Notes: generated by a model from the letters alone, not told the origin. Counted from the first letter of the stretch, positions 347-16,906 are shown. The stretch: DNA of 64,000 bases from Schizochytrium sp. TIO01 (GCA_004764695.1 SMSO01000031.1:6616761-6680760), one strand, 5' to 3'. A program made the numbers and translations.

Positions 347-1636
347 GGTGAAAAAAACACAAGAATTTAAGCTAGCTACAAGCTATATGCTCCAAACAAG
401 ATTGCCCCTTTTTCAAAGACAAAGACCTTCTCTCAAGAGCTTCTAAGCAACTTTGCTGCAATCTCTCTCGAACCCTTTTGCGTCTTTTGCGTCCAGAAGC
501 TCTTTTCGTGAAGCGCTGCCAGGATTAAACCCACCTTAATCCACATGTAGAACTCTGTATGTAGATATTTATGTAGTAAGGTGGTAAATTGTTCCATCTC
601 CACCTTGTTCTATTTGTTTTGTTCTTTCTTCCCTTGCACTTTCCTCAGAACCCTCATAAATGCCGAAACTAGTTTTCATTCGTCTGAGAACTCAGTTGGG
701 TGAATTCAAAAGCGCACATCATCAGCATTGGCAGCTACCGTGTGGTCCCTGTGTCGAGAGCCACCCCAGATGAAATACTAGATATTTATGTATGTGTAGA
801 TGTGTGTAGATGTATTGGGATTTTTAATACATTGAGCGGCCTGGGTTCATCTTTGGTCTTGCTAAGAAATGCAATTCTCGTAGAGCAGAATGGCTTTGCG
901 GGAGTATTTTGCACGTGCTTATGTTGTATTTGAAGCAAAGCTCGCGTCATAGATTTATAGCGCAGATCCACGAACTCGATGTAATATGATAAAGCACGGA
1001 CATGAGCTGCGTTGATGAAAATCACGTGTGGAAAACCTTCCGATCAGAATCATGCAAAAGAACACTATTCCCCGATGCGACGACTTCGGAAGAGTTTTCA
1101 GAAGTTCATGTGCACAGCCCATGTTCGACCACCACGTGCGACTGCTTGTTTATTAACCACCTCTGCGCAAACCTACTCAATGATACATCCGAGTTGCAAA
1201 CTTTTGAGAGAAAGAGCCGAAGAAAGAGGAACTGCGAAGTGCAAACACATTAGTGCCACGAGGTGACATGTCTTAGGGACATATGGCCTTTTCGATCACC
1301 GGTGACTGAGACAAAGATCGTGAGGTGTGTAGCAGTCAAGATATAGAGACACGGCTTAGAAGTTCATAAGATGATGTCCCTACGTGGTAGTAGGTAGGTT
1401 GTAGGTAGGTACTGTGCTGTGTACTTTTCCAAGTACGCTCTCTTGCTTGTCTCGAAGGATGACAGCTTGATGAGATGGACCTGCAAACCTTATTTGGTCG
1501 AGCTCTGGCAACGCTCTTTAAGAAGTTACGCGATTGAGGAGACTTTGGCAGGTTGACGAACAGCGGAAGTTCGAAAGCTAGGGTTTGACTTGGCGGGCTA
1601 ACAGGTGCACAAGGGGGTGTGAAGACTTACGACAAG

Positions 1637-4600
1637 ATGGGGTCTGCCAGAATAAAGCAGGTTATTGCATGCATTCAAGACTATGGGGAGGAGGTAAAGT
1701 AAGTTTGGCATAAGAATGCTCTTGATTTATCAATGACGTGTAACACTAACCTTGCAAATTGATTTGCTGGCATTCGCAGTCTTTCTGGAATTCAAGTCAC
1801 CCACGAGGATGCATCTGCTCTAACCAAGGCCATCGCAGATTCCCGTCGACTTCGCCGTGTCTAGTAAGTTTCAAAGCAACCTCATCTCAACAAAAATGAC
1901 CAAGAGTTATACTAACAGTGGGGGGTTTCCTATATTCAGTTTGGATAATATCCGCATAGCGACTACCGATGTATTCCATCTAGTAAAATCTGTTCAAGAG
2001 AATCCACAGCTTGTTGAATTCCAGTAGGTTTCTAAAGATAGTGCGTTCGTCAAGAAACATTTACGCTAACTATAATGCTCACAGGCTTCGGGGAATAAAT
2101 ATTGATGCTGAATGTGCCAAGGAGCTGCACGAGCTACTTGTTAAATGTCGGAGTCTGAATACTTTACAGTAAGTCTTTCACAAGCCAAATTGCCCGAAAA
2201 TACATCTTCTGGCGCTGCAGGAAGTCTTGCAAAGTTCTAACATTAAATCATAGACTGAAAGACAGCTATCTGGATGTTCCTTATGTGATGCTTCTAGCAC
2301 CAGGCTTAGATGGCTGCCAACAACTACGTGTTCTGGAGTAAGTTATTTCGCTAAGGTTCATATCGTATTCATTGATTAATTAGTCGTACTTACAAATTTC
2401 TCACCTTAGTTTGGGAAACAATCAGCTTGGTGCGGACGGTGCTCTGGGATTTGCTTCTGCTCTGAAGTCTACCTCAAAATTGATTGTGCTTCGGTAAGTT
2501 TGAAGTATTTGCATAAATTTACATGCTTAGTCTAACATAATCTTCGAACGGACAGACTTGGAGATAACGATATTGGTAGCGAAGGCTGTATGGCTCTTGT
2601 GAACGCCCTGTTGGCGATCCCTGGCCTTATTGAGATTGAGTAAGTTTGGTTGACTTTTTTTTCTGGACATTCGAAAAGTGAATCTAACTTGTCTTTGCTT
2701 GGTGTAGTCTTCGAAATAATCAAATAGGCCCTGAAGGTGGCAAAGCACTTGCTACATTGATCAAAACGCCTTTAAGAAATCTCAGGCGCCTTGAGTACGT
2801 TAAATAGAAGTATTGAGTTTGATGCTAAAAGCAATCGTGACTAACACGTCTGCGATAAACAGGCTAAGTGATAACCAAATTGGTCCAAAGTCTGCTATGG
2901 AGATTTTCAAAGGGCTGCAAAACTGCCCCGATCTAAGCTCTCTATTGTACGTTGAATTCAGCATTGTGGATACGCTAAATTATTTAACTATGACTATCAT
3001 ACACTAACAGGGGCTTTTGGAAATATTATTGCAGTATGTCAAATAATAATGTTGGGCAAGACGCAACAGCAACTCTTGCTGTTACGCTCAATCGGTGTCG
3101 TGACTTTTCAAACTTGGAGTAAGTTTTTTTCGCTTTGCTAATTATTCATGATTAGTAGACAAGAAATCTAACATCACTTGAATGTTGTAGCCTAAGCGGA
3201 AATAACATAGGACGCTTGGGAGGCATGGCCATTGCTGTCCCATTGAGATCGTGTGGTAGCTTGTCCTACCTGCGGTAAGTTACTAACGAAAAGAGGTGAG
3301 AGAAACGATATTTCATCACACGAACTAACACTATCATCATTGCAATATTGTTCTTTTCATTTCTAGCCTGGACGATAATAATATCGGCGAAGAGGCTGGC
3401 ATGACTCTTGCACGCGCACTCGGGTCCTGCAAAAAGTTGACTTATATATCGTACGTTGACGTATAGCGCACGCTTCTTGACTTTTTGAGAACTAACTTGT
3501 ATTGACATAAACACAGCCTCCAGAACAACGCAATCGGGCCTGACGCAGCATGTACTCTTGCTGCTTCACTTCGAAACTGTGGGGACTTAACACATCTACT
3601 GTACGTTGCGAGATCAAATAAATCTTTTGGGGCTATCAATCGAAACTAATAAAAGGCAAATGCGAATATGAAGTCTTTCCAACAATAACATAGGAGCTCG
3701 TGGAGCAAAGGCACTCGCAGGCACCTTCAGCAATTTTGATGGTAGGAAACGACGAAAGTAAGTAATCATGCAGAATTGAATCGATTGTTTTCTAACAGGA
3801 TGCTAACTGTCTTCATACGTTGAATATGGTATCAAAAAGGCTTGGGCAAGTTTTGAGAGGATATTGGGGACTACAGGCAATTGTGTAAGTTGAAGACGCC
3901 CAAAGATTTCTTGAAAAAACTTCTATCAGTTTCTGACATCCTCGACGGAAATATAAATTCGATATATATAGACTAAATCAAAACCAGATTGGGCCAGACG
4001 CAAGTACCCAATTTGCGCAAGTTCTGAAAGGACATAAAGACCTTCGCTCTATAGGGTAAGTTAACCTTTAACAACTCCTTCCTTGCTTTCTCGGGAAACT
4101 GTATTTTGGGAAACTAACGAGTAATGGTACGCTGATAGTTTTGGAAATAACAACTGTGGTTCAAAAGCAGCATCTGCATTTGCAGAGGTTATTCAAGGTT
4201 GTGAATACCTATATGCTTTAAAGTAAGTCCTAACCCGGTATGAATCCGTCAGAAACGCGGTATTCTGTTCTAGTATGCTAACTCAATCGAAAACATCAAT
4301 GCAATCAAATCATACAGTCTTGAAGACAATAACCTTCCCGCAGGGAGCAGTCAAATGATAGCTCGCGCTTTGAATGTATCCACTTGTCTAGAGGTTTTGC
4401 AGTAAGTTCTTCGTCAAGTTTCAATAATTAGAAACAGTTTATGTAATTGAACTTTTACTCACTCGCTCATTGCTTACCTTTTGAGCTTCAGTTTTGGAGG
4501 CAATGATTTGGGAGTGAACGCAGGACCAGCCCTCGCCAACTCTCTTCGCAGCTGTACAAAGTTGACCCAAGTCTCGTAAGTTCAACACAGCTTGCTACAA

Positions 4601-7600
4601 GGTTGCCACGCTAAAATACTAACTGTCCTAGGATAAATATAGCATTCAAAACACCAACATTGGAGCCCCAACGGCAATAGCTCTTGCCGAGATACTTAGA
4701 AACTGTTGCACCTCGTCAAAGCTAGAGTAAGTTAGTATAAGGTTAACGATTACGCGTTTTTCGAAAGAAATAATGCTGACATATACTTGCGTACATAGTC
4801 TGAGAGGCAACGACTTTACTCCAGAGGCGATTCAGATATTACAAAATATTGTTGAGGAGTCACAAACGAAAGTCAACCTTGTGTAAGTTTTTCTGTCAAG
4901 AGCGTGTAATTCGAAAAGTAAACTGACCTAGTAATCTTACTTTCATGATCTTTTCAGCCTGAATGATGAAGAGAAAGATGAAGGCAACCAAGAGCGGCTT
5001 ACAAGTGGCAATGATAATGATGATGATGGTGATAGTCAATCAGGTCACCAGCTGCTCGAACTTGCCTCTTCTGTATCAGAAAACCTCGATGCGCGATCTG
5101 ATGTTCTTGAGGATGATGTTCTCAGCGGAGGACTAAGCGAACCTCAAAGCTTCCATGGAGACTGTGATCGGGGTATTTGCATACTTGATAGACTTTCCTC
5201 CGATATTGCCTTATTTAGAGTAAAGCAGACCATATCTCATCTCAACGAGGACATTGCTTTACTTCGCGAGTCCATGTCCGACGACTTATCTGCTGCAATT
5301 CGAATGCTGCAAGCAAGAAGTGCCGACAAACGATGGATTCTACAAAAGATGAATGAATTCGAAGATTTTCAAACTCAACTTCGAGGAAGCAACAAGATTA
5401 ACCAAACATCACGCTCCATCAGAGATCGCGATGCAGCTCGCAAAATTTTGAATGACGATCTTTGCAAATATGTTGCAAAAACACCACAGTATGAAGCTGG
5501 TACCACATCCCTACAAACTTTTCTGCAGCGTCTAAGATCTCGTCTTGAGGAGCTAGGGTTGGATGAGAACGATAAGATGGAATCTGAGATGCTCGATGCC
5601 GACCTCAACAGTATAGTAGAGACAGCACAACAGAATGTCCATGCGACCTTGCATGGGCCGGTCGCAACTTGGATATCAGGCCACGACGTTGACGTTTGGA
5701 CGGGTCGCAAGAAGCAGGCCTTGCAAACCTTGTCCTCACGTGTCCAAGACCTTGGCTACGGTGATCCCTTTTCAATGCTAGTTCTGGCAAGATCAACTTT
5801 CACGCAAGGCCTTGACACAGAACTGCACAAGCTTCAAGAGGTTCTTGAAGGTGAGTGTCGTGTTTTGCGTCGCCAAGCTGGTGATAAAGAACCCACAAAG
5901 AGTGTCCATCACTCACTGAGAGTGCTAGAGCAAGCTCTAACTCAGGCCTTCGATGCATGTAACTCCAAGACGGGTCTCGAGCAGAACAAAGGCACTATCG
6001 AAGAGCTCCATCGATTCATTTTCACCGGAATGCAGCATCCCGATTGTACAACGCTCGAAATGACCATCGAAAAGTTGGGGCAATATCGAGATTGTACCGA
6101 AGATCTTCGACATTTTCAAAGCCGGCTAGCACGGCCTAAACCAGGTGCTAACCGACAAGACATCGAGAATGAGATTCAAATGTGTCAGAACATTATTGCA
6201 GGGACAGATGCTCGTCTGCTGGGGGAGACAATTCGGTATGAGCGTTCTATGTTACTCCGTTTTGCTGGAGATCACTATCCAGAGTTATTGCATGACGAAA
6301 CTTGGCAAACAAAAATCGGTATTACAAGCCCTGAGTATTTGGGTATTTCAAAGTGTGGACTGTGGCTCAGTGAGGCGCGCATCGCAGATTTTGAAGTCAT
6401 ACAACAGTTATCTCTGCACGAGGGTCGCTATGTTGCACTAGTGCGTGATGTGGATGGTCAAGAGATTGTCTTGAAACGCTTTTCACTTGCCGATCCCAAG
6501 ATGACAGCTCAGTTCATCCGCCAAGCTGAGGCACTATCACGAATTCACTCCAACCATGTCATTCAAATCGCAGGTATCTTTGTGGACACAAGTGTTGACG
6601 GCATAACATTTGGTTGCGTTCTAATGCCTTACTATAGACGCGGAGATTTATCGAGATGGCTCGCTGATAATCTGCACGCAAATGATGAAACGCGAAAGCG
6701 TCTTGCCATTGGTATTCTTAATGGAGTTAGGGAAGTGCATCAGCATGGTCATGTTCACTGTGATATCAAGCCCGCGAACGTCTTCCTCTCTGAAAATCTG
6801 ACTCCTGTTTTGGGCGACTTTGACGGTGTTCAGGAAGTGGACCGTACAATATCACGCAATCTACAAGGCACCCCACGATACCTAGCGCCTGAATTGATGC
6901 AGGAAGGCTCCAGACACACCACACCTATGGTAGACATGTATTCCATTGGCGTACTGCTAGAGGACCTGTTCCCGAATCCTAGTGAGGCCACCGTTGATCT
7001 GATTACATCATTAAAACAACCAGAACCATCGCAACGCCCATCCGCAGACGAGGCACTTAGTCACCGCGCCTTCAACACTGCATCGGTTCCTAGCAAGACA
7101 TGCATTTTATGTCTTGATGACGATGCTTCTGCGCTCTCTGGAGTAAGTTGTGGCAATGGTCATTTTGTTTGTGAAGATTGCCTCTCCAGAGCTGTCCAAT
7201 CAGCCACAGAACTACAGTCTTCAGTGCACGTTTCTGACAATGGTGCTATGGAATGCTCCGTGGAAGGCTGTGGATCTTCATTTCATGGGACTGATATTGC
7301 CCAACACGTCTCATCAGACATCTTCGAGGCCCTGATTGTAATCGTACGAGAGCGAGCAGCAAGGAAGGGCAGAAAAGATTGTAGAAGAACGAATGCAAGC
7401 AATGATGCTTCTTGACAGTCTCACCAGGGACGCAGAGCGTCATCTGAAGTTCATTCGAGATCGAATTCTTTCAACTTGTTGTCCGCACTGCCATGCGGTA
7501 TTTAGCGACTTCGAAGGTTGCTGCGCACTGAAATGTAGTAACAGTGAATGCAAGTATTACTTTTGTGCATGGTGTTTGGATTATCCGACAACAAGTACTC

Positions 7601-7845
7601 AGGAGTGTCATCAGCATGTTGCAACATGCCCTGGTAATGTAAGTCGAGATCAGGATCCGTTTTACCCGGAAAGCTTTGAATGTGTTGAAGAAGCTTGGAG
7701 AGGTTTGCGAGCTAAGAGAATTCATAAATACTGGGAAAACAATATACCAGAAGGTGATGTACGCGAAATGGTCAGAGGGAAGCTTACACCATTATTGACG
7801 GCCGATATCGTTGGTCCTGGATTTGTCTTACCGAATGATGACTAA
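1637..7845 (+). CDS. Multi-exon LRR - helical region - protein kinase - RING - RING2/IBR-like protein (gene A); 1-nt frameshift near 7367-7369
   Basis: Hand-spliced exons: 1637-1698, 1780-1863, 1940-2023, 2085-2168, 2254-2337, 2410-2493, 2556-2639, 2708-2794, 2863-2946, 3035-3118, 3191-3274, 3367-3450, 3517-3600, 3674-3757, 3840-3884, 3972-4055, 4139-4222, 4318-4401, 4492-4575, 4643-4726, 4799-4882, 4958-7415(7845). All 21 introns are GT(A)-AG, 61-95 nt and phase 2, and most have a CTAAC/CTGAC branch site. The spliced frame is open and joins ORF 5274-7415. Exons encode ribonuclease-inhibitor-class LRRs (LxxNxIGxxGxxxLAxxL). Kinase motifs: IVLKRF, HCDIKPANV, GDFDG, GTPRYLAPE. RING: CILC..CGNGHFVCEDC..CSVEGC. 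The +1 frame (7393-7845) encodes CPHC..FEGCCALKC..CKYYFCAWC. Confidence 0.88.
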
Positions 7846-8239
7846 ATGATAAGACCCACAGATCGATCAAATTAACCCATCAGGGTTGATCAAGGACTTC
7901 GAGATCAAGACGGTTTTACCACTTGATCAAGAGCAAAATCAAATCCAAATTGAGGAGAGCCAAATGGTTGCTTTTGCAGCAGTTATGTTTTTTGGTGGTT
8001 TGATCAGTATTTAGGTTAATTACTAATTAATCGATTAAGATGCTTTTATTCAGGACGAGAATGCTAATGTCAACAAACATAAGCTTCGCGGTTTTGAGAG
8101 CCACTTGAAGTCTACGTTTTGAAGCTGTCGATGCATATTTGCACAAGTGTTCAATAGTTGAAATACGCCTATAAATTATCTGTTAAACCGTCAATTGGTT
8201 TGATGAATACGATGAAGAAGGAAATGTTTCGATTTTGTT

Positions 8240-11200
8240 TTACCGAGAGTTTGATCCTCTAGGATTTGCTGATTGATAGCCGCATTGTTGGAGAAAATAA
8301 GCGGTAGCATTTGTAAGACCCTCCCAGGCCTTTATTGCACCTAAAAGTGCATGAACATAGCTTGAATCTCCCTCAAATATTGTATTTGACAATTCATCAA
8401 ACTCGTCAGCAGACTGCATCGCTTTCGATAGAATGTTTAGAAGGGCTGGTGTCCTCAGTACAACGAGCCTCCTAAGCTCCGCGCTTCCGGGGAAGTATAC
8501 AAGAGCACCTCTATCATGCATGTGTGCTAGCATTTTACGTACAGCTCGATGTGGTACTCCGCACTGCGTAGTAGCAATAGAAAAGACATGCTCTTCTGAT
8601 AGAAAATTGCGATCTGTTTTATACATTTCATGAAGGCATAAAGACCACCGTAGGGATATCTTTTCCTTCACAATTGATTGCAAAGCAGCAGTAGATGCTA
8701 AGCATGATCTTAGAGCGTAACAATGCGAAAGATCGACACGATTAGTATTATCGATCGGGAAGAAGCTCAGGCGCTCTTTGCGATTTGTAATTATTTTCAA
8801 GCTGGGCTCAGAGCTGATTGCAGGCATAAGAGTTCGCTCGATGGCACGATGGTACTTTTGGTCAGAAATTGTATCGAGATGTGTTCCAACAAGAACAACA
8901 GTTGCTCGAGAGGCTTGTGTTCGAATGAAGTAAAGCTGAAGATATATGGCTTCTAGGGCGGTATCTTGATCATCTAAATGATCCAATTCTTCCATATCAA
9001 TGACGTCTTCAAGAAGAGCCTTCCCATATAATTCTCGCATGTCAAAAACAAGAAGATAGAGACCTCCAGAGGAAAAAAAGAGACGATGTAAGGGAAAGAA
9101 TTCTTTCGTTCCGCCATATTCCCATATCATCAAACTTACTTCCTCTTGCAACTTGCGAGTTTGTTTTTGAGCCTGCAGCCGGGCCTCGGCATCGTACAAT
9201 GTGGAGAGATATTCTGTTGTGAGTTGAAGGGTCGATTCACTTGAGGATGCAATTGAGCTACCTTCCTCCAGCGTTGTACTTTCTGAAGAGGAACGGCGTA
9301 AAGACACAGCTGATTTAACCGAATCTCGTATCCGACTGCTACGTTGACGCAAGAGGGTTTTGTGCCTGTATTTTCGGTCCGAGAGAAGACGTGAAAGGTC
9401 AGAGGATACTATATCCGCCTGAGTTATCCAATCTTGGGCCCGAACAAGTTGAGTTTGCACACCATTTGTTGGAATATACTCTGGAACGTAGGGTTGTCCA
9501 AGCAAGGTTCGGATGGTAGAGGTTTTCCCAGAGTTACACTTTCCAACAACCATGAGTTTGACTCTTGCCCACGTCGCACTTTTGTCACGCAAGAGGGCAT
9601 CTAAAGCATACTGTCCAAAATCACTCACTTCTTGTCTGATCTCCTCGAAGTGTGCATCAATGCGGAGTGCAAGGTCATCTGGAATATCGACATCGAGTCT
9701 GAACGTATTAAAAAGGGGTGTCAGTAACCAAAGTCTAGGTAAAACTTGAATTAGGGAACTTACGAAAGAGTTTGAAGGCTGAGGTTTAACTCAACAGCAT
9801 CTGCAAGGGCTAAAACACCTTCGGCATCAATGTTTGTATCGATAAGGCTATCCCCCCCCCAAAAAAATACAAAAAAATACAAAAATAAAAAAAAATCGAC
9901 AAGGAGCACCACGACGAGTGCAATATTGAATTATAAAACAACGCGTCAGTCTCTCAGTTCTTAATCGATATTAAAACTGCAATACTTACTTCAGAACTTT
10001 CAGGGTAGATGTATTGCCACGGAGAGCAGATGCAAACACACGGGCACCCTCGTTGCCAATGTGGTTGTGTTGAAGACTGCTTACAGAAAAGGCCAAGCAA
10101 ACGTCAGAAATCTGCATCCGCGTCTTCACAGCAGTCTGCTTTATTCAAAAAACCTACAGTAGACTTGAGAGTGTATCATTATCCTGAAGTAGGGTTGCGA
10201 GCTCAACAGCACCTTCAACACCAATATTATTACTTGCAAGCCTGTATTTATTCTCATGTGAAAAATATACCAAGATGAAAGGTGAGCCAGGCGTGTTCAA
10301 TGAGTCGATGTTCAAGCAGATAGTACCTACGATAAGGTTTGAAGAAATCGATTTTCCAGCAAGGCCCCCGCAATGGCACACGAGCCTTCGTCACCAACAT
10401 TGCAATCTTGCAGGCTATTCAATTGGGGTCAAGAAAATGTCAGTATCAGATGTCATTTCTAAGTTTTTAGCTTACATTAAGGTCAACGGATGAAACTTAC
10501 CACAGTGTTCTCAGACTTTGATTCACTCGTATACCTTCTGCGAGTGCCAAAGCACCTTCAGATCCAATGTTACAACCCGAAAGACTATGTTTTAATAGTA
10601 TCGAATAAGCAAAACCGAAATGATCATGGGTTTTAAATTATCACCATTAGCAAAAACAGAAAAGAAAAAGTGAGTGATCCTGCGAAGCAAAAAACCAACT
10701 GGGGCAACAAGAAAAGCATTAAAAAATTTACGTACTCAAGAAATTCAAGAGACTTGCTCTCTCGGAGAGTATCTGCAAGAGCAAAACAGCTGTCTGCCCC
10801 AATTTCATTGTTACATAGACTGTATTTGATGCAAAGAATACGAAAGTTATATGATTGAGTCAACATCCAACTCTCATCTCAGTAATTTATCTTTAAGTTC
10901 TGGCAGACACTTACATCAAAGTTTCTAAAACTGTGTTATTGCGCAACGCCTCTCCAAGAGCCATGCAGCCCTCAGCGACAATCTTATTGGATTTGAGACT
11001 ATTCGGCACGGGTTAGAACTGTCCTTCTGCGGTTGTAATTAAAAGTCGATTGCGATTAATTGAAATAAAGTATAACTCACTCCAGTATACGTAACGACTG
11101 GTTTTCTCGCAAGCTTGCGGCAAGCGCTCCAGTTCCTTCGTTTCCAATCAGGTTATTTTCGAGACTGTCAATTATGCATGAGAAAGGCGAGTTAGAGTTT

Positions 11201-11629
11201 ATGAATGTACAAAATTTCATTGAGCAAGACGAAATTAAGAGGTGCACGTACATAAGTACCTCTAAAGAACAAATCTCAAAAAGTGCTTCTGCAAGAATAG
11301 AAGCACCAGCATTCCCAATATTGCAGTTCCCGAAACTATCGTATTAATTTGAGTTAGTAAAATGAATATTCAAGAGATGCTAGCTCCTTCCGGGAAAAAT
11401 CAAGTCGCCTTTGCTTTTCGAACTCACTGCATATATTTAATTTTTCCACTCGCTAGCATTGCATCAGCTAGGCTTGACATACTCTCATCATCAATATCTG
11501 CCTCGATCCTGTATGGTTTTCTAGTTAGTTTTACCCAACACGAAATAACTGTTTTCTAGCTTACCTGAGTTCTGTCGCTCCATTTTGCAATTCTGCAAGT
11601 GCAGTTTCAACATCTGCAGCACAGGACAT
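8240..11629 (-). CDS. Multi-exon ROCO-family protein: 10 LRR exons + Roc GTPase + partial COR (gene B, ~787 aa)
   Basis: Hand-spliced exons (minus): 11629-11565, 11508-11428, 11335-11252, 11164-11081, 10998-10915, 10819-10736, 10584-10501, 10414-10331, 10241-10158, 10076-9990, 9847-9764, 9698-8240. The 11 introns are GT-AG, phase 2 and 56-151 nt. The frame joins ORF 9628-8240. Roc motifs: KLMVVGKCNSGKTS (G1), PTNGV (G2), IWEYGG (G3), VGTHLD (G4), then COR-A-like LAHMHDRGALVYF..LVVLR. Confidence 0.88.
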
Positions 11630-13492: not shown

Positions 13493-16400
13493 ATGGAGGA
13501 CCTTGACCGCCTCTCGCTGGTGTCGCGAGTATCTCGCGAACTAGAGACCGGCCTAGGGATCGGTGAAGAGGCCCTTGCAGAGTTCTTTATCTCCCTCGCC
13601 AAGGAGCACGAACGCAGCGGCCCTGATGCTTTCGTGGCGGCACTTCATGAGCAAGATGACAGCATTCCTGAAGACCTCGCGCGGACCATCTTTGCGCTTG
13701 TCGCCGATATGAACGCGGCTAGTAGACCAAAGGGCCCCACTTCAGGGAATGGTGACGCGGGACCCTCCTCGAAGTCTCAGGACCCTCTTGCAAACAAGCT
13801 TCCGGGACTCTCGAGGCCCGATGAAAAGGGCCCAATTGGCGTAGGAGAAGGCCGTGATTCTGCCACAGAGCGAAGGCTTCGCGAACTTAGAGCGCAGTTG
13901 GACAAATCTGCACCCTCAAGCGACTCTGCAGACCATAGGAATGCAAATCTTGGGAACGGTAACTCAAGGTTCGGAAGCGGAAGAGAAGGCGTCTCCATTA
14001 AGAGAGGCTCCGAGAGCGAACCTCTGTTTGGCAAGGTTTATCAGGGAGTTGTGAGAAATGTGAAGGACTTTGGTTGCTTTGTAGAGCTTCCGGAGTTCGC
14101 ATCGAGGTCGTCTCGTGGAGGTGGTATTGTAGAAGGCCTAGTTCGTGCGAACCAAATGGCGAGGGATATGAGAGATAAAAAACCGTATGATGTTGTTCGG
14201 AGGGGAGACAAGGTACTGGTGAAGGTCGTGAGCCAACCAGGAAACAAGTTGTCTTTAAATATGGCGGAGGTGGATCAACAGAGCGGCGTGGACCTCAGGC
14301 CTGCCAAAGGATCAGCGAACTCATCAGTCTCGTCAAACTCTGTTGTAACGTCCACAATGGCATCTACGTCTATGAGAGACCCTATGTCACGAGAGCTGCC
14401 AGGTATTGTACAGCGCAAGCGCAAGATGAAACACTCTGAAGAAGAACTCTGGGAGATCCGACAACTCATTAACTCTGGTGCATTGCCAAAAGATGCTTAC
14501 CCAAGCTTCATTGAGGAAAAAGGCGCAGCCGGTGAATTTGAGGAAACCGAGGAGGAGCTGGAGATTGAGCTCAACGAGGCTGAACCTGCATTTCTAAGAG
14601 GCCAAACCGAGTTAGCTGCATCAATTGGACAAGTCAAGATTATCAAAAACCCGGAAGGTAGTATGCAACGTGCAGCTGAAAATCAAGCTGCCATCGCAAA
14701 AGAACGCAGGGAGCTCAAGCAAACAGAAGAACAAGCGCTTCTCAATGCTGTTCCTCGAAACTTGTCGCGTGCTTGGCTAGATCCCATGGCTGATGAGCGT
14801 GAGCGTACTCTAGCTGGTGATCTTCGCGGCATCACTCTCCCCGGGAAAGAAGTCCCTGAATGGAAAAAGAGCGCTTTTGGTAACAACACTAGTTTTGGTA
14901 TCGTATCTGATCGTTCGATTCAGCAGCAGCGCGAAAGCTTGCCTATTTACCAACTGAAGACCGCACTTTGCGAAGCCTTCGTTCAAAACCAGATTTTGAT
15001 TGTGGTAGGAGAGACAGGGTCTGGTAAGACAACACAGATGACCCAGTACCTCGCAGAGATGGGTTTTACAAAACGTGGCATAATTGGATGTACACAGCCG
15101 CGTCGCGTGGCTGCTGTGTCAGTAGCCAAGCGTGTTGCTGAAGAGGTAGGGTGCCATATTGGCCAAGAGGTTGGCTACACAATTCGCTTCGAGGACTGCA
15201 CTGGGCCAGAAACTGCGATTAAGTATATGACAGATGGTATGCTTATGCGAGAGATGCTCATGGACCCAGATCTTAAGCGGTACTCCTGCATCATGCTGGA
15301 TGAGGCTCACGAGCGTGGCGTGAGCACTGATGTATTGTTTGCTTTGCTGAAGAAATTAGTGATGCGTCGCAAAGATTTTCACCTGATTGTTACTAGTGCG
15401 ACGCTAGATGCTGAGAAGTTTTCAAAATATTTCCTTGATGCCAAAATCTTTTCTATTCCTGGTCGAACGTTTCCAGTGGAGATTATGTATGCTAAAGAAC
15501 CAGAATCTGATTACATGGATGCCTCTTTGGTTACTGTAATGCAGATTCATTTGAACGAAGGCCCGGGTGATATTCTTCTTTTCTTGACTGGTCAGGAAGA
15601 GATTGATACAGCTTGTGAAGTGTTGTTTCAACGTATGCAAAAGTTGGGAAAGGGCGCTCCAGAGCTTGTTATCCTTCCTGCTTATGGTTCTTTGCCCAGT
15701 GAAATGCAAAGTCGAATTTTCGAGCCAGCTCCGCCTGGTGCACGCAAACTGATTGTGGCCACAAACATTGCAGAAGCCTCTATCACAGTTGATGGTATTT
15801 ATTATGTTGTTGATCCGGGTATGTGCAAAATCAACGCATACAACCCGAAGCTGGGTATGGACTCACTAGTGGTGACACCGATTTCACAAGCCTCTGCTCG
15901 TCAGCGTGCGGGTCGTGCTGGTCGTACGGGTCCTGGTAAATGTTTTCGTCTATACACTGAGTTAGCTTTCAAGACAGAGATGTTGCCAACCAATGTACCG
16001 GAGATTCAACGAACCAACCTAGGTAATGTTGTGCTGCAGTTGAAGAGTATGGGTATCAACGACCTCCTCAGCTTTGATTTCATGGATCCCCCTCCTGCAC
16101 AAACTTTGGTTGCTGCTTTGGAAAAGCTTTATGCATTAGGGGCTTTAGATGAGGAAGGCCTGCTTACTCGCATGGGTCGAAAGATGGCTGCGTTTCCTCT
16201 GGATCCTATTCTTTCCAAAACACTAATTTCTTCTGTCGAGCTGGGTTGTGCAGAAGAAGTCGTAACAATTGTAGCCATGCTTTCCGTTGAGAATATTTTC
16301 TTTCGACCGAAGGAGAAGCAGGCTCAGGCTGATCAAAAGAAAGCCCGTTTCCACCAACCTGAGGGTGATCACTTGACATTGCTTGCTGTGTACGAGTCTT

Positions 16401-16906
16401 GGAGGAGGTCGGGCTTCACGTCAGCATGGTGTGCGGAACAGTTTATTCAAACGCGTTCTATTCAGCGAGCCCAAGAGATTCGCAAGCAGCTTGTTGGTAT
16501 TTTGGGGCGTTACCAAATGCCTATTGAGTCTTGTGGTCGTAATTTCAAGGCAGTGCAAATGGCTATTGCTAGTGGGTTCTTTATGCATGCAGCCAAGCGT
16601 GATCCTACTGAAGGGTACCGTACTCTGGTTGAGGGTCAACCAGTTTTCATTCACCCTGGTTCTGCGCTGTTTCAGCGCAACCCAGAGCTTGTCATTTATC
16701 ATGAATTGTTGCTCACTTCTAAGGAGTACATGCGACAGGTCATGGTAATTGACCCGAAGATTTTGATTGAGGTAGCACCAAACTTTTACCGGAGCGCAGA
16801 CCCTCACCAGCTTACTCGGCGTAAGAAGCGCGAGCGGATTGAACCTATGTACGATCCTCGCGACCCTGGAGCACAAGCGTGGCGGTTGTCTCGGCGTCGT
16901 GGTTAG
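13493..16906 (+). CDS. DHX8: Pre-mRNA splicing DEAH-box RNA helicase Prp22/DHX8 (1137 aa, intronless)
   Basis: N-terminal helical region and S1 domain ([18 protein letters not shown]), followed by [42 protein letters not shown]2/OB regions and the Prp22-type C-terminus WRLSRRRG. Confidence 0.96.

Follow-up and report, generated by a model that had tools for sequence, protein, structure and literature searches.

The window analysed here is a 64,000-nucleotide (nt) stretch of the genome of Schizochytrium sp. TIO01 (GCA_004764695.1 SMSO01000031.1:6616761-6680760). On its plus strand lies a 22-exon gene, hereafter the window gene, which encodes leucine-rich repeats (LRRs) of the ribonuclease-inhibitor (RI) type, one per exon, ahead of a protein kinase and two zinc fingers. 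Positions 1637-4957 form the 5' part of this gene. When the exon table was rebuilt from the sequence alone, a 62-nt leader exon was followed by 20 internal exons, of which 18 measure 84 nt, one 87 nt and one 45 nt, and all 21 introns were GT..AG introns of 61-95 nt in phase 2, the last of them at 4883-4957. Donors of the form GT[AG][ACG]GT were located first, and AG acceptors were then tested at in-frame distances upstream; an acceptor lay exactly 84 nt upstream of each donor, except once at 87 nt and once at 45 nt. An earlier note on this DNA had given the same table, and it was confirmed to the base.

Exon grammar and transcripts of the window gene

Each of the 21 introns splits a codon 2+1 at residue x5, where LxxL meets xLxxN. 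Including the two bases carried over from the preceding exon, an exon translates as a 28-residue unit, xLxxNxIGxxGaxxLaxxLxxCxxLxxL, and the consensus of the 18 exons of exactly 28 codons is LxxNxIGxxxxxxLAxxLxxCxxLxxL. The period of 28-29 residues, with LxxLxLxxN/CxL followed by an alpha-helical segment, is that of RI-type LRRs. The earlier description of one such repeat per symmetric exon is supported by profile matches (below), but has to be relaxed for the first four repeat exons (1780-2337), which are degenerate and lack the Asn/Gly signature. The parts of the gene are as follows; exons 2 to 14 and 16 to 21 are each supported by sequence and RNA.

1506..1636, plus: 5' untranslated region; transcript contigs start at about 1506-1521, with no ATG from that point to 1637
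1637..1698, plus: exon 1, leader, 62 nt; ATG at 1637; encodes MGSARIKQVIACIQDYGEEV plus 2 nt; joint 1698>1780 in four runs
1780..1863, plus: exon 2, 84 nt, degenerate LRR
1940..2023, plus: exon 3, 84 nt, degenerate LRR, donor GTAGGT
2085..2168, plus: exon 4, 84 nt, degenerate LRR
2254..2337, plus: exon 5, 84 nt, degenerate LRR
2410..2493, plus: exon 6, 84 nt, RI-type LRR
2556..2639, plus: exon 7, 84 nt, RI-type LRR; Pfam LRR_6 E 0.004
2708..2794, plus: exon 8, 87 nt, LRR of 29 amino acids (aa); LRR_6 E 0.0011
2863..2946, plus: exon 9, 84 nt, LRR
3035..3118, plus: exon 10, 84 nt, LRR
3191..3274, plus: exon 11, 84 nt, LRR; LRR_6 E 0.051
3367..3450, plus: exon 12, 84 nt, LRR
3517..3600, plus: exon 13, 84 nt, LRR; solitary 92% copy on contig C31 (window 3440-3657)
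3674..3757, plus: exon 14, 84 nt, LRR lacking the closing LxxL; LRR_6 E 0.004
3840..3884, plus: exon 15, 45-nt insert that gives the closing beta-strand segment (…GLQAI) to the irregular exon-14 repeat; joints 3757>3840 and 3884>3972 seen in four RNA runs
3972..4055, plus: exon 16, 84 nt, LRR
4139..4222, plus: exon 17, 84 nt, LRR
4318..4401, plus: exon 18, 84 nt, LRR; G4399A (Leu>Leu) in three of four RNA runs
4492..4575, plus: exon 19, 84 nt, LRR
4643..4726, plus: exon 20, 84 nt, LRR
4799..4882, plus: exon 21, 84 nt, last LRR
4958..7845, plus: terminal exon 22, with acidic/helical linker, kinase and zinc fingers; stop at 7843-7845 once a one-base excess is discounted
7846..8072, plus: 3' untranslated region; transcript contigs end at about 8006-8072

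None of the 21 LRR exons (1637-4882) contains a stop codon, the splice sites are perfect, and retention of any of the 21 introns would bring in an in-frame stop. The claim that any exon can be skipped or swapped without a frameshift holds in part: the frame is kept in all 231 possible exon-exon joins, but six of them create a stop codon, all with exon 1780-1863 (which ends in TA) as the upstream partner, leaving 225 open. Calling of open reading frames (ORFs) does miss the array, as the note had said; no ORF of at least 150 aa was listed in 1637-4957, and the only public gene call found, P0001, comprises the terminal exon alone.

The stretch in question was contained in 20 public RNA runs from 11 studies, six of which carry 55-58% of its words, the share expected for fully spliced mRNA; the word depth of the gene in RNA runs was high. 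Assembled contigs of four runs from four studies were aligned to window 1560-7559. The exons are joined exactly at the predicted coordinates, with GT..AG ends, by a single contig of ~4.9 kb in each of three runs and by pieces in the fourth, so that the junctions predicted earlier are borne out. The 22 joints reported correspond to the 21 introns and one realignment variant due to the synonymous change G4399A. Fifteen joints were listed at the predicted coordinates, and the record coordinates account for each of the 21 exons once and in the order of the genome (to take run X17, window 1560-1698 is record 40-178 and window 4958 is record 1823). No exon-skipping joint was found in the transcript contigs of the four runs.

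The transcripts also bear on the reading frame of the terminal exon. None of the four RNA assemblies contains the base that the genome assembly has at 7365 and that produces an apparent stop at 7413-7415, and in the expressed paralogue P0138 the frame is continuous across the equivalent position. Since all four RNA runs lack it, the stop is attributed to an excess assembly base, and the frame runs on to 7843-7845; the extra base is probably an assembly indel.

Next, we asked how old the array is and how much it varies. The 18 regular exons share on average only 39.5% nt and 25% aa identity in pairwise comparison (maximum 56% nt), neighbouring exons are no more alike than distant ones, and the closest relative among 290 LRR exons from 20 other loci reaches at most 61% nt identity. 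A search of the genome with the DNA of the whole array returned no paralogous array and one solitary fragment of 218 nt on contig C31, a 92% copy of window 3440-3657 (the end of exon 12, the intron, exon 13 and part of the next intron). This fragment (L022:1501-1718, minus strand; G000:C31:8817090-8817307) lies in intergenic-looking DNA with no LRR exon nearby, and it also occurs in a 6,974-nt contig of run X15. There is no LRR exon on the minus strand in 1637-4957, and introns of 61-95 nt are too short to hide a spare exon. Near-identical, spare or reversed exons, the traces of recent shuffling, were not seen in the window gene but do occur in other arrays of this genome.

Repeat-to-repeat comparison within the window gene is saturated, the proportion of differing synonymous sites (pS) being 0.78 and that of nonsynonymous sites (pN) 0.53, with no contrast between hypervariable codons and the others. 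The strains from which the four RNA runs derive differ by one synonymous change in the LRR coding part (1,706 nt), and by five synonymous and four non-synonymous ones in the 3' exon. At the rate of the 3' exon, ~4.6 differences would be expected in the LRR part, where one was seen (Poisson P ~0.06). The evidence says that the array is old and fixed, and that its modular build records how the domain originated and is not evidence of present combinatorial use.

The predicted protein and the neighbouring genes

The predicted protein of ~1,530 aa consists of 20 RI-type LRRs, a linker, a Ser/Thr kinase, a RING-like finger and an Ariadne-RING2-like finger. Only 20 aa precede the LRRs, and no signal peptide was found in the predicted protein, which is presumably cytosolic on that ground. 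For the LRR part, a profile was built from the translations of the 18 regular exons, and the other searches were run exon by exon. The profile matched RI-type LRR structures, namely the designed RI-like protein 4r5d (E 2.3e-17), NOD2 (5irm, E 6e-13) and RanGAP1 (E 2e-12), and further NLRP1, ribonuclease inhibitor (RNH1), DRC5 and LRRC34. In single-exon Pfam scans, four of 17 exons matched LRR_6 (PF13516) at E <=0.05, all of them under the 23.4-bit cut-off. These matches are weak because the units are cut within the beta-strand, each exon holding model positions 10-24 only.

The terminal exon encodes the following:

ahead of the kinase, plus: helical/acidic linker of ~460 aa; no domain assignable
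6390..7040, plus: Ser/Thr protein kinase domain; Pfam PF00069, E 4.5e-29, 102 bits against a cut-off of 31.7 bits
7098..7202, plus: RING-like finger (CILC…C.NGH..C..C); Pfam RING models at E 0.004-0.07, sub-threshold; conserved in paralogue P0138
7477..7581, plus: Cys-rich finger resembling RING2 (Rcat) of Ariadne-type RBR ligases (CPHC…GCCALKC…C…FCAWC)

An ESM Atlas search with the 460-aa linker gave nothing usable. In the translation of the kinase, the motifs VLK, HCDIKPAN, DFD and APE are all in place, and the domain looks catalytically intact. The second finger matches the RING2 structure of Ariadne-1 (1wd2, E 0.018) and IBR_1 (E 0.13), and is 54% identical to the tail of P0138. As for the RBR layout (RING1, IBR, RING2), no clear IBR was found in the terminal exon, where the finger matches are all under the cut-offs. 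Nor did Pfam match Roc, COR, NACHT, NB-ARC, TIR or death-fold domains there. With no Roc/COR and no NACHT or NB-ARC match, the window gene is neither a ROCO protein nor an NLR.

The neighbour downstream, arranged tail to tail with the window gene, follows the same exon grammar with a different effector; no TIR was found in its scanned ORF. Its position and that of a neighbouring helicase gene are:

8240-11629, minus: at least eight LRR exons of 84 nt (~9764-11335), then a Roc and COR-A exon (8243-9628)
13493-16906, plus: intronless gene for a 1,137-aa DEAH helicase of the DHX8/PRP22 type, 80% identical to that of the thraustochytrid Hondaea fermentalgiana

Another array of the old type, with at least 11 exons of 84 nt, short introns, a period of ~180 nt and exons 44.5% identical, was observed ~31.7 kb before the window (L001:1773-3866, on G000:C30).

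A genome-wide family of one-LRR exons

The search of the genome that the earlier note had proposed for sizing the family was carried out with a pattern in which AG is followed by 84 nt of exon, with Asn9, Gly12 and a hydrophobic residue 11 encoded, and then by GTAAGT. It returned 573 + 524 = 1,097 matches in the 64-Mb genome, as against three for a reversed-pattern control; the pattern is stringent, and the count is a lower bound. A six-frame LRR_6 scan of the genome gave 1,056 first-look candidates. The arrays are of two kinds. In old arrays, such as that of the window gene, the introns are short and the exons 40-48% identical; in young ones, exon identity is 77-92%, the introns measure ~270-400 nt and the period is 355-487 nt.

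Three kinds of 3' exon follow the arrays, encoding linker-kinase-RING-RING2-like effectors, Roc-COR-A(-COR-B)-TIR effectors, or a conserved tail of ~100 aa. At least 56 paralogues of the kinase-RING effector exon were scored among 263 candidates, with open frames of ~925 aa; many lie near contig ends, and those nearest to the window gene are 39-43% identical. The kinase-effector family came to light in a full HMMER scan, a word-indexed search with the terminal exon having returned only itself and remote kinases. The paralogue P0138 comes from the marine transcriptome MMETSP0960, where it is a complete ORF, and contig C13 of this genome encodes it at 100% identity. Of COR-A there are at least 26 loci genome-wide. 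Examples of the other two kinds are:

L004:3000-5294(+), L013:2052-4670(-), L015:5683-8217(+), L018:1333-3876(-): Roc, COR-A, in one case also COR-B, and TIR at the C-terminus, in large exons directly after LRR arrays
L002, L006, L007, L008, L016, L017, L020: arrays near contig ends with a conserved tail exon of ~100 aa and neither Roc nor kinase

The tail exon, …SAKTRRK.LEQISRELRCIH…SSKEDYIAAQKVELD…LGPYIFE, has no Pfam match. The kinase effector itself occurs with ankyrin repeats in Hondaea, with WD40 in one environmental homologue and with LRR_6 in others. As LRR, ankyrin and WD40 are found on one effector, the repeat domain behaves as an exchangeable sensor module.

Variation within six young arrays was examined by aligning whole exon-plus-intron units. 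At codons x7, x8 and x10, nt diversity is 0.38-0.56 in five of the six arrays and 0.28 in the sixth, L010; the remainder of the exon has 0.05-0.08, and the introns (~300 nt) 0.012-0.067. Hypervariability (0.44-0.66) extends to the final two bases of the exon, with which the split codon x5 begins, and the variable patch of the beta-strand is divided between two exons. Because pN/pS within the hypervariable codons is saturated, the synonymous sites of the other exon codons and the introns served as yardsticks. Measured in this way, pN at x7, x8 and x10 is 0.38-0.61, as compared with a pS of 0.03-0.16 elsewhere in the same exons, or roughly 3 to 20 times higher. The scaffold is thus homogenised, with differences maintained in the residues on the concave, ligand-facing side, which is the signature of a receptor repertoire.

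The positions of the arrays were mapped too, and those beside the subtelomeric ribosomal DNA are young, with nearly identical exons and introns apart from hypervariable concave-face codons. Of the first 100 pattern matches listed, which are on contigs C3-C6, 77 have a contig end within 60 kb. At four contig ends, an array with a 385-nt period and its tail exon lie between a 5S gene and an 18S-5.8S-28S cluster:

L002:2007-9092 with L023:2882-8410 (G000 contig C3, right end): 385-nt-period array and tail exon beside the ribosomal DNA (rDNA)
L005/L029: the same rDNA layout
L026/L007 and L028/L006: the same layout, mirrored

No telomere repeats were found at the contig ends examined, and the subtelomeric position rests on the adjacent 5S and 18S-28S genes. 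According to the Aurantiochytrium limacinum genome paper, the subtelomeric 5S gene is oriented away from the end, and the 18S-5.8S-28S cluster toward it, and the layout in the present genome agrees with this. On the strength of the helicase, P0138 and this layout, the host is placed among Aurantiochytrium-type thraustochytrids, which are stramenopile protists. The same paper describes 'Group 0 LORE-TEARS' as subtelomeric spacers without database similarity. In position, unit length and range of copy number, the 385-nt-period arrays are like these elements, which probably are LRR exon cassettes. The window gene is chromosome-internal and lies 6.6 Mb into a contig of 9.8 Mb. In L005, L006, L012 and L019, the array is preceded by a long stretch of the microsatellite (GCTT/CAAG)n, which reads as (ACLL)n; a short run occurs in L002 and L017, and contig C24 ends in this microsatellite.

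Judged by its sequences, the family appears to carry immune-like hallmarks: TIR effectors, sites beside subtelomeric rDNA, and hypervariable concave-face codons.

Interpretation and relation to known systems

The window gene is real and expressed, and it probably is a fixed LRR-kinase-RING gene, a diverged, chromosome-internal member of a family of at least 56 such genes. Its LRR domain would have grown by tandem duplication of an exon-plus-intron unit, which would have left each LRR in its own symmetric phase-2 exon, and the same building rule recurs more than 1,000 times in this genome. All exons of the window copy would always be spliced in, in order, and the LRRs may serve as a fixed-geometry sensor or as an autoinhibitory domain that gates the kinase and an E3-like output. 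In the younger kinase-RING members, and in the sister LRR-Roc-COR-TIR and tail-only genes, the binding face is diversified. Four points weigh against this account. The transcripts were assembled contigs and not raw reads, in which rare or low-level isoforms are invisible; the strains behind the RNA runs differ by only ~0.2%, which gives low power on LRR variation; no orthologue was found in another species; and the RING and RING2 matches stay under the Pfam thresholds.

Could the symmetric exons of the window gene be in use now, through regulated or stochastic skipping or through cassette exchange, and thus make up a combinatorially variable recognition domain, as the earlier note had proposed and as has been suggested for brown-algal ROCOs and human NLRP3? 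The architecture would allow it, given that all 21 introns are in phase 2 and 225 of 231 joins are open; LRR exons are alternatively spliced in brown-algal ROCO genes (PMC11378527), exon 5 of NLRP3 is skipped (PMC6642158), young members of the family are hypervariable on the binding face, and the 218-nt copy on C31, 92% identical, shows that cassette-sized DNA has moved at least once. That copy, however, stands alone in intergenic-looking DNA, outside any LRR gene. A skipping joint was seen in none of the four assemblies, the exons diverged anciently and a near-identical donor was found nowhere, and no part of the gene varies less between strains than the LRR part. We regard present combinatorial use as unlikely. 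Of the proposal of a modular, combinatorial receptor, what stands is a large unannotated family with immune-like hallmarks; what lacks support is the variability of the window gene itself, which has one isoform in four assemblies and the same exon order in the strains sampled, two of the three observations that the earlier note had said would refute it.

It is rather improbable that the window gene encodes an ordinary, non-immune signalling or scaffold protein whose LRRs form a constitutive interaction surface (as in RanGAP, LRRC34 and DRC5), with the expansion serving development, mating or the cytoskeleton. The exon profile matches RanGAP1, DRC5 and LRRC34 too, the window copy is conserved, lies inside the chromosome and shows constitutive expression in four studies, and it lacks TIR, NACHT and death-fold domains. 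Nevertheless, such a role sits poorly with at least 56 paralogues, many of them close to contig ends, with TIR effectors in the sister family, with the hypervariable concave face of young arrays, and with the exchange of LRR, ankyrin and WD40 repeats on one effector, which is typical of receptor repertoires and not of housekeeping scaffolds. If the gene were instead a pseudogene in decay, or an artefact of chance or annotation, the stop at 7413-7415 would be real. The frame of the assembly does break at ~7365-7415; yet the base at 7365 is missing from all four RNA assemblies, whose frame is open as far as 7845, paralogue P0138 is continuous at that point, the 21 LRR exons are stop-free with perfect splice sites, and the RNA word depth is high, which makes this explanation hardly credible.

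Beyond the fixed LRR-kinase-RING gene that we favour, a wider proposal can be made only tentatively, and we consider it somewhat doubtful as a whole. The window gene may be the conserved internal relative of a germline LRR receptor system of thraustochytrids, in which at least 1,100 one-LRR exons would feed kinase-RING, Roc-COR-TIR and tail-only genes. This system would diversify beside subtelomeric rDNA, through homogenisation of exon-plus-intron units and selection or mutation on four concave-face codons; it might be antiviral, antibacterial or allorecognitive, and the LORE-TEARS would be its cassette arrays, and hence coding DNA.

The parallels drawn by the earlier note with the ROCO genes of brown algae, here taken together with their LRR-kinase genes, and with vertebrate NLRs are real (PMC3341825, PMC11378527, PMC6642158). 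Ectocarpus has 37 LRR-ROCO and 15 LRR-kinase genes with one 24-aa LRR per 72-nt exon (Zambounis 2012, PMC3341825). Its LRR-kinases have repetitive exons but lack the clustering, birth-and-death and shuffling seen in the ROCOs (PMC3341825), and alternative splicing of brown-algal ROCO LRR exons has been described (Teng 2024, PMC11378527). Like our host, brown algae such as Ectocarpus and kelps are stramenopiles; in both, each LRR has its own exon with a length that is a multiple of three, and concave-face sites are diversified, here in the young arrays. The Ectocarpus 'type II' LRR-kinase exon (xLxxNxL…LxxL) even has the same boundary between LxxL and xLxxN, and the division there between quiet LRR-kinases and shuffling ROCOs resembles that between the window gene and the ROCO-TIR and subtelomeric arrays here. 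The differences are in the unit (72-nt exons and 24 aa there, 84-nt exons and 28-aa RI-type repeats here), in the introns, which are short in this genome (61-95 nt in the window gene, ~300-400 nt in young arrays), in the effectors (plain LRR-Roc-COR there; kinase, RING and RING2-like, or Roc-COR-TIR in sister genes, here), and in the host, which here is a heterotrophic unicell.

Most vertebrate NOD/NLRC genes have one 28-aa RI-type LRR per exon with the border fixed in the beta-strand (Hoss 2019, PMC6642158), while NLRP genes have two LRRs per 171-bp exon, and LRR exon 5 of NLRP3 can be skipped (PMC6642158). The window gene shares with the NOD/NLRC genes the RI type, the single 28-aa repeat per exon, the fixed beta-strand border and the possibility of in-frame exon removal. 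Unlike vertebrate NLRs, it has no NACHT/NOD module, its LRRs are N-terminal instead of C-terminal, its effector is a kinase with zinc fingers, and no alternative splicing was seen in its transcript contigs. The resemblance, compared at the level of the border, may be convergent. In LRRK2 and other ROCO kinases, as in the predicted product of the window gene, LRRs stand upstream of a Ser/Thr kinase within a single large protein of the cytosol, but the window gene has neither Roc nor COR. Closer to home, the Hondaea fermentalgiana proteins GBG34857.1 (P0136; E 3.8e-158, 39% identity) and GBG31919.1 (P0144; E 1.8e-79, 41% identity) have the same linker-kinase-RING effector, although the Hondaea 'ankyrin repeat and protein kinase domain-containing' proteins have ankyrin repeats and not LRRs as the sensor. 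The young arrays, in turn, resemble lamprey variable lymphocyte receptors in their LRR cassettes, invariant scaffold and hypervariable concave face. They differ in being germline exon arrays joined by splicing, with no evidence of somatic assembly, and the analogy does not apply to the window gene.

New here are the one-repeat, 84-nt exons of RI type in a protist, the fusions to new effectors and the great size of the family. In the collection of papers searched, none links thraustochytrids with LRR, ROCO or TIR genes. SAR species outside the brown algae, including Schizochytrium aggregatum, have been credited with at most four ROCOs (PMC11378527), which the at least 26 COR-A loci found here contradict. 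The subtelomeric 'LORE-TEARS' of Aurantiochytrium, described as spacers, are suggested to include coding LRR cassettes. The occurrence of the one-LRR-per-exon rule in a heterotrophic marine protist suggests that the rule is older, or more readily reinvented, than has been thought. Hundreds of genes are thereby exposed, a repertoire that escapes ORF-based as well as standard gene calling. Aurantiochytrium is host to persistent mirusviruses and is genetically tractable. If there is indeed an innate-immune or non-self system in these protists, it would be directly testable in Aurantiochytrium, by virtue of these mirusviruses and that tractability.

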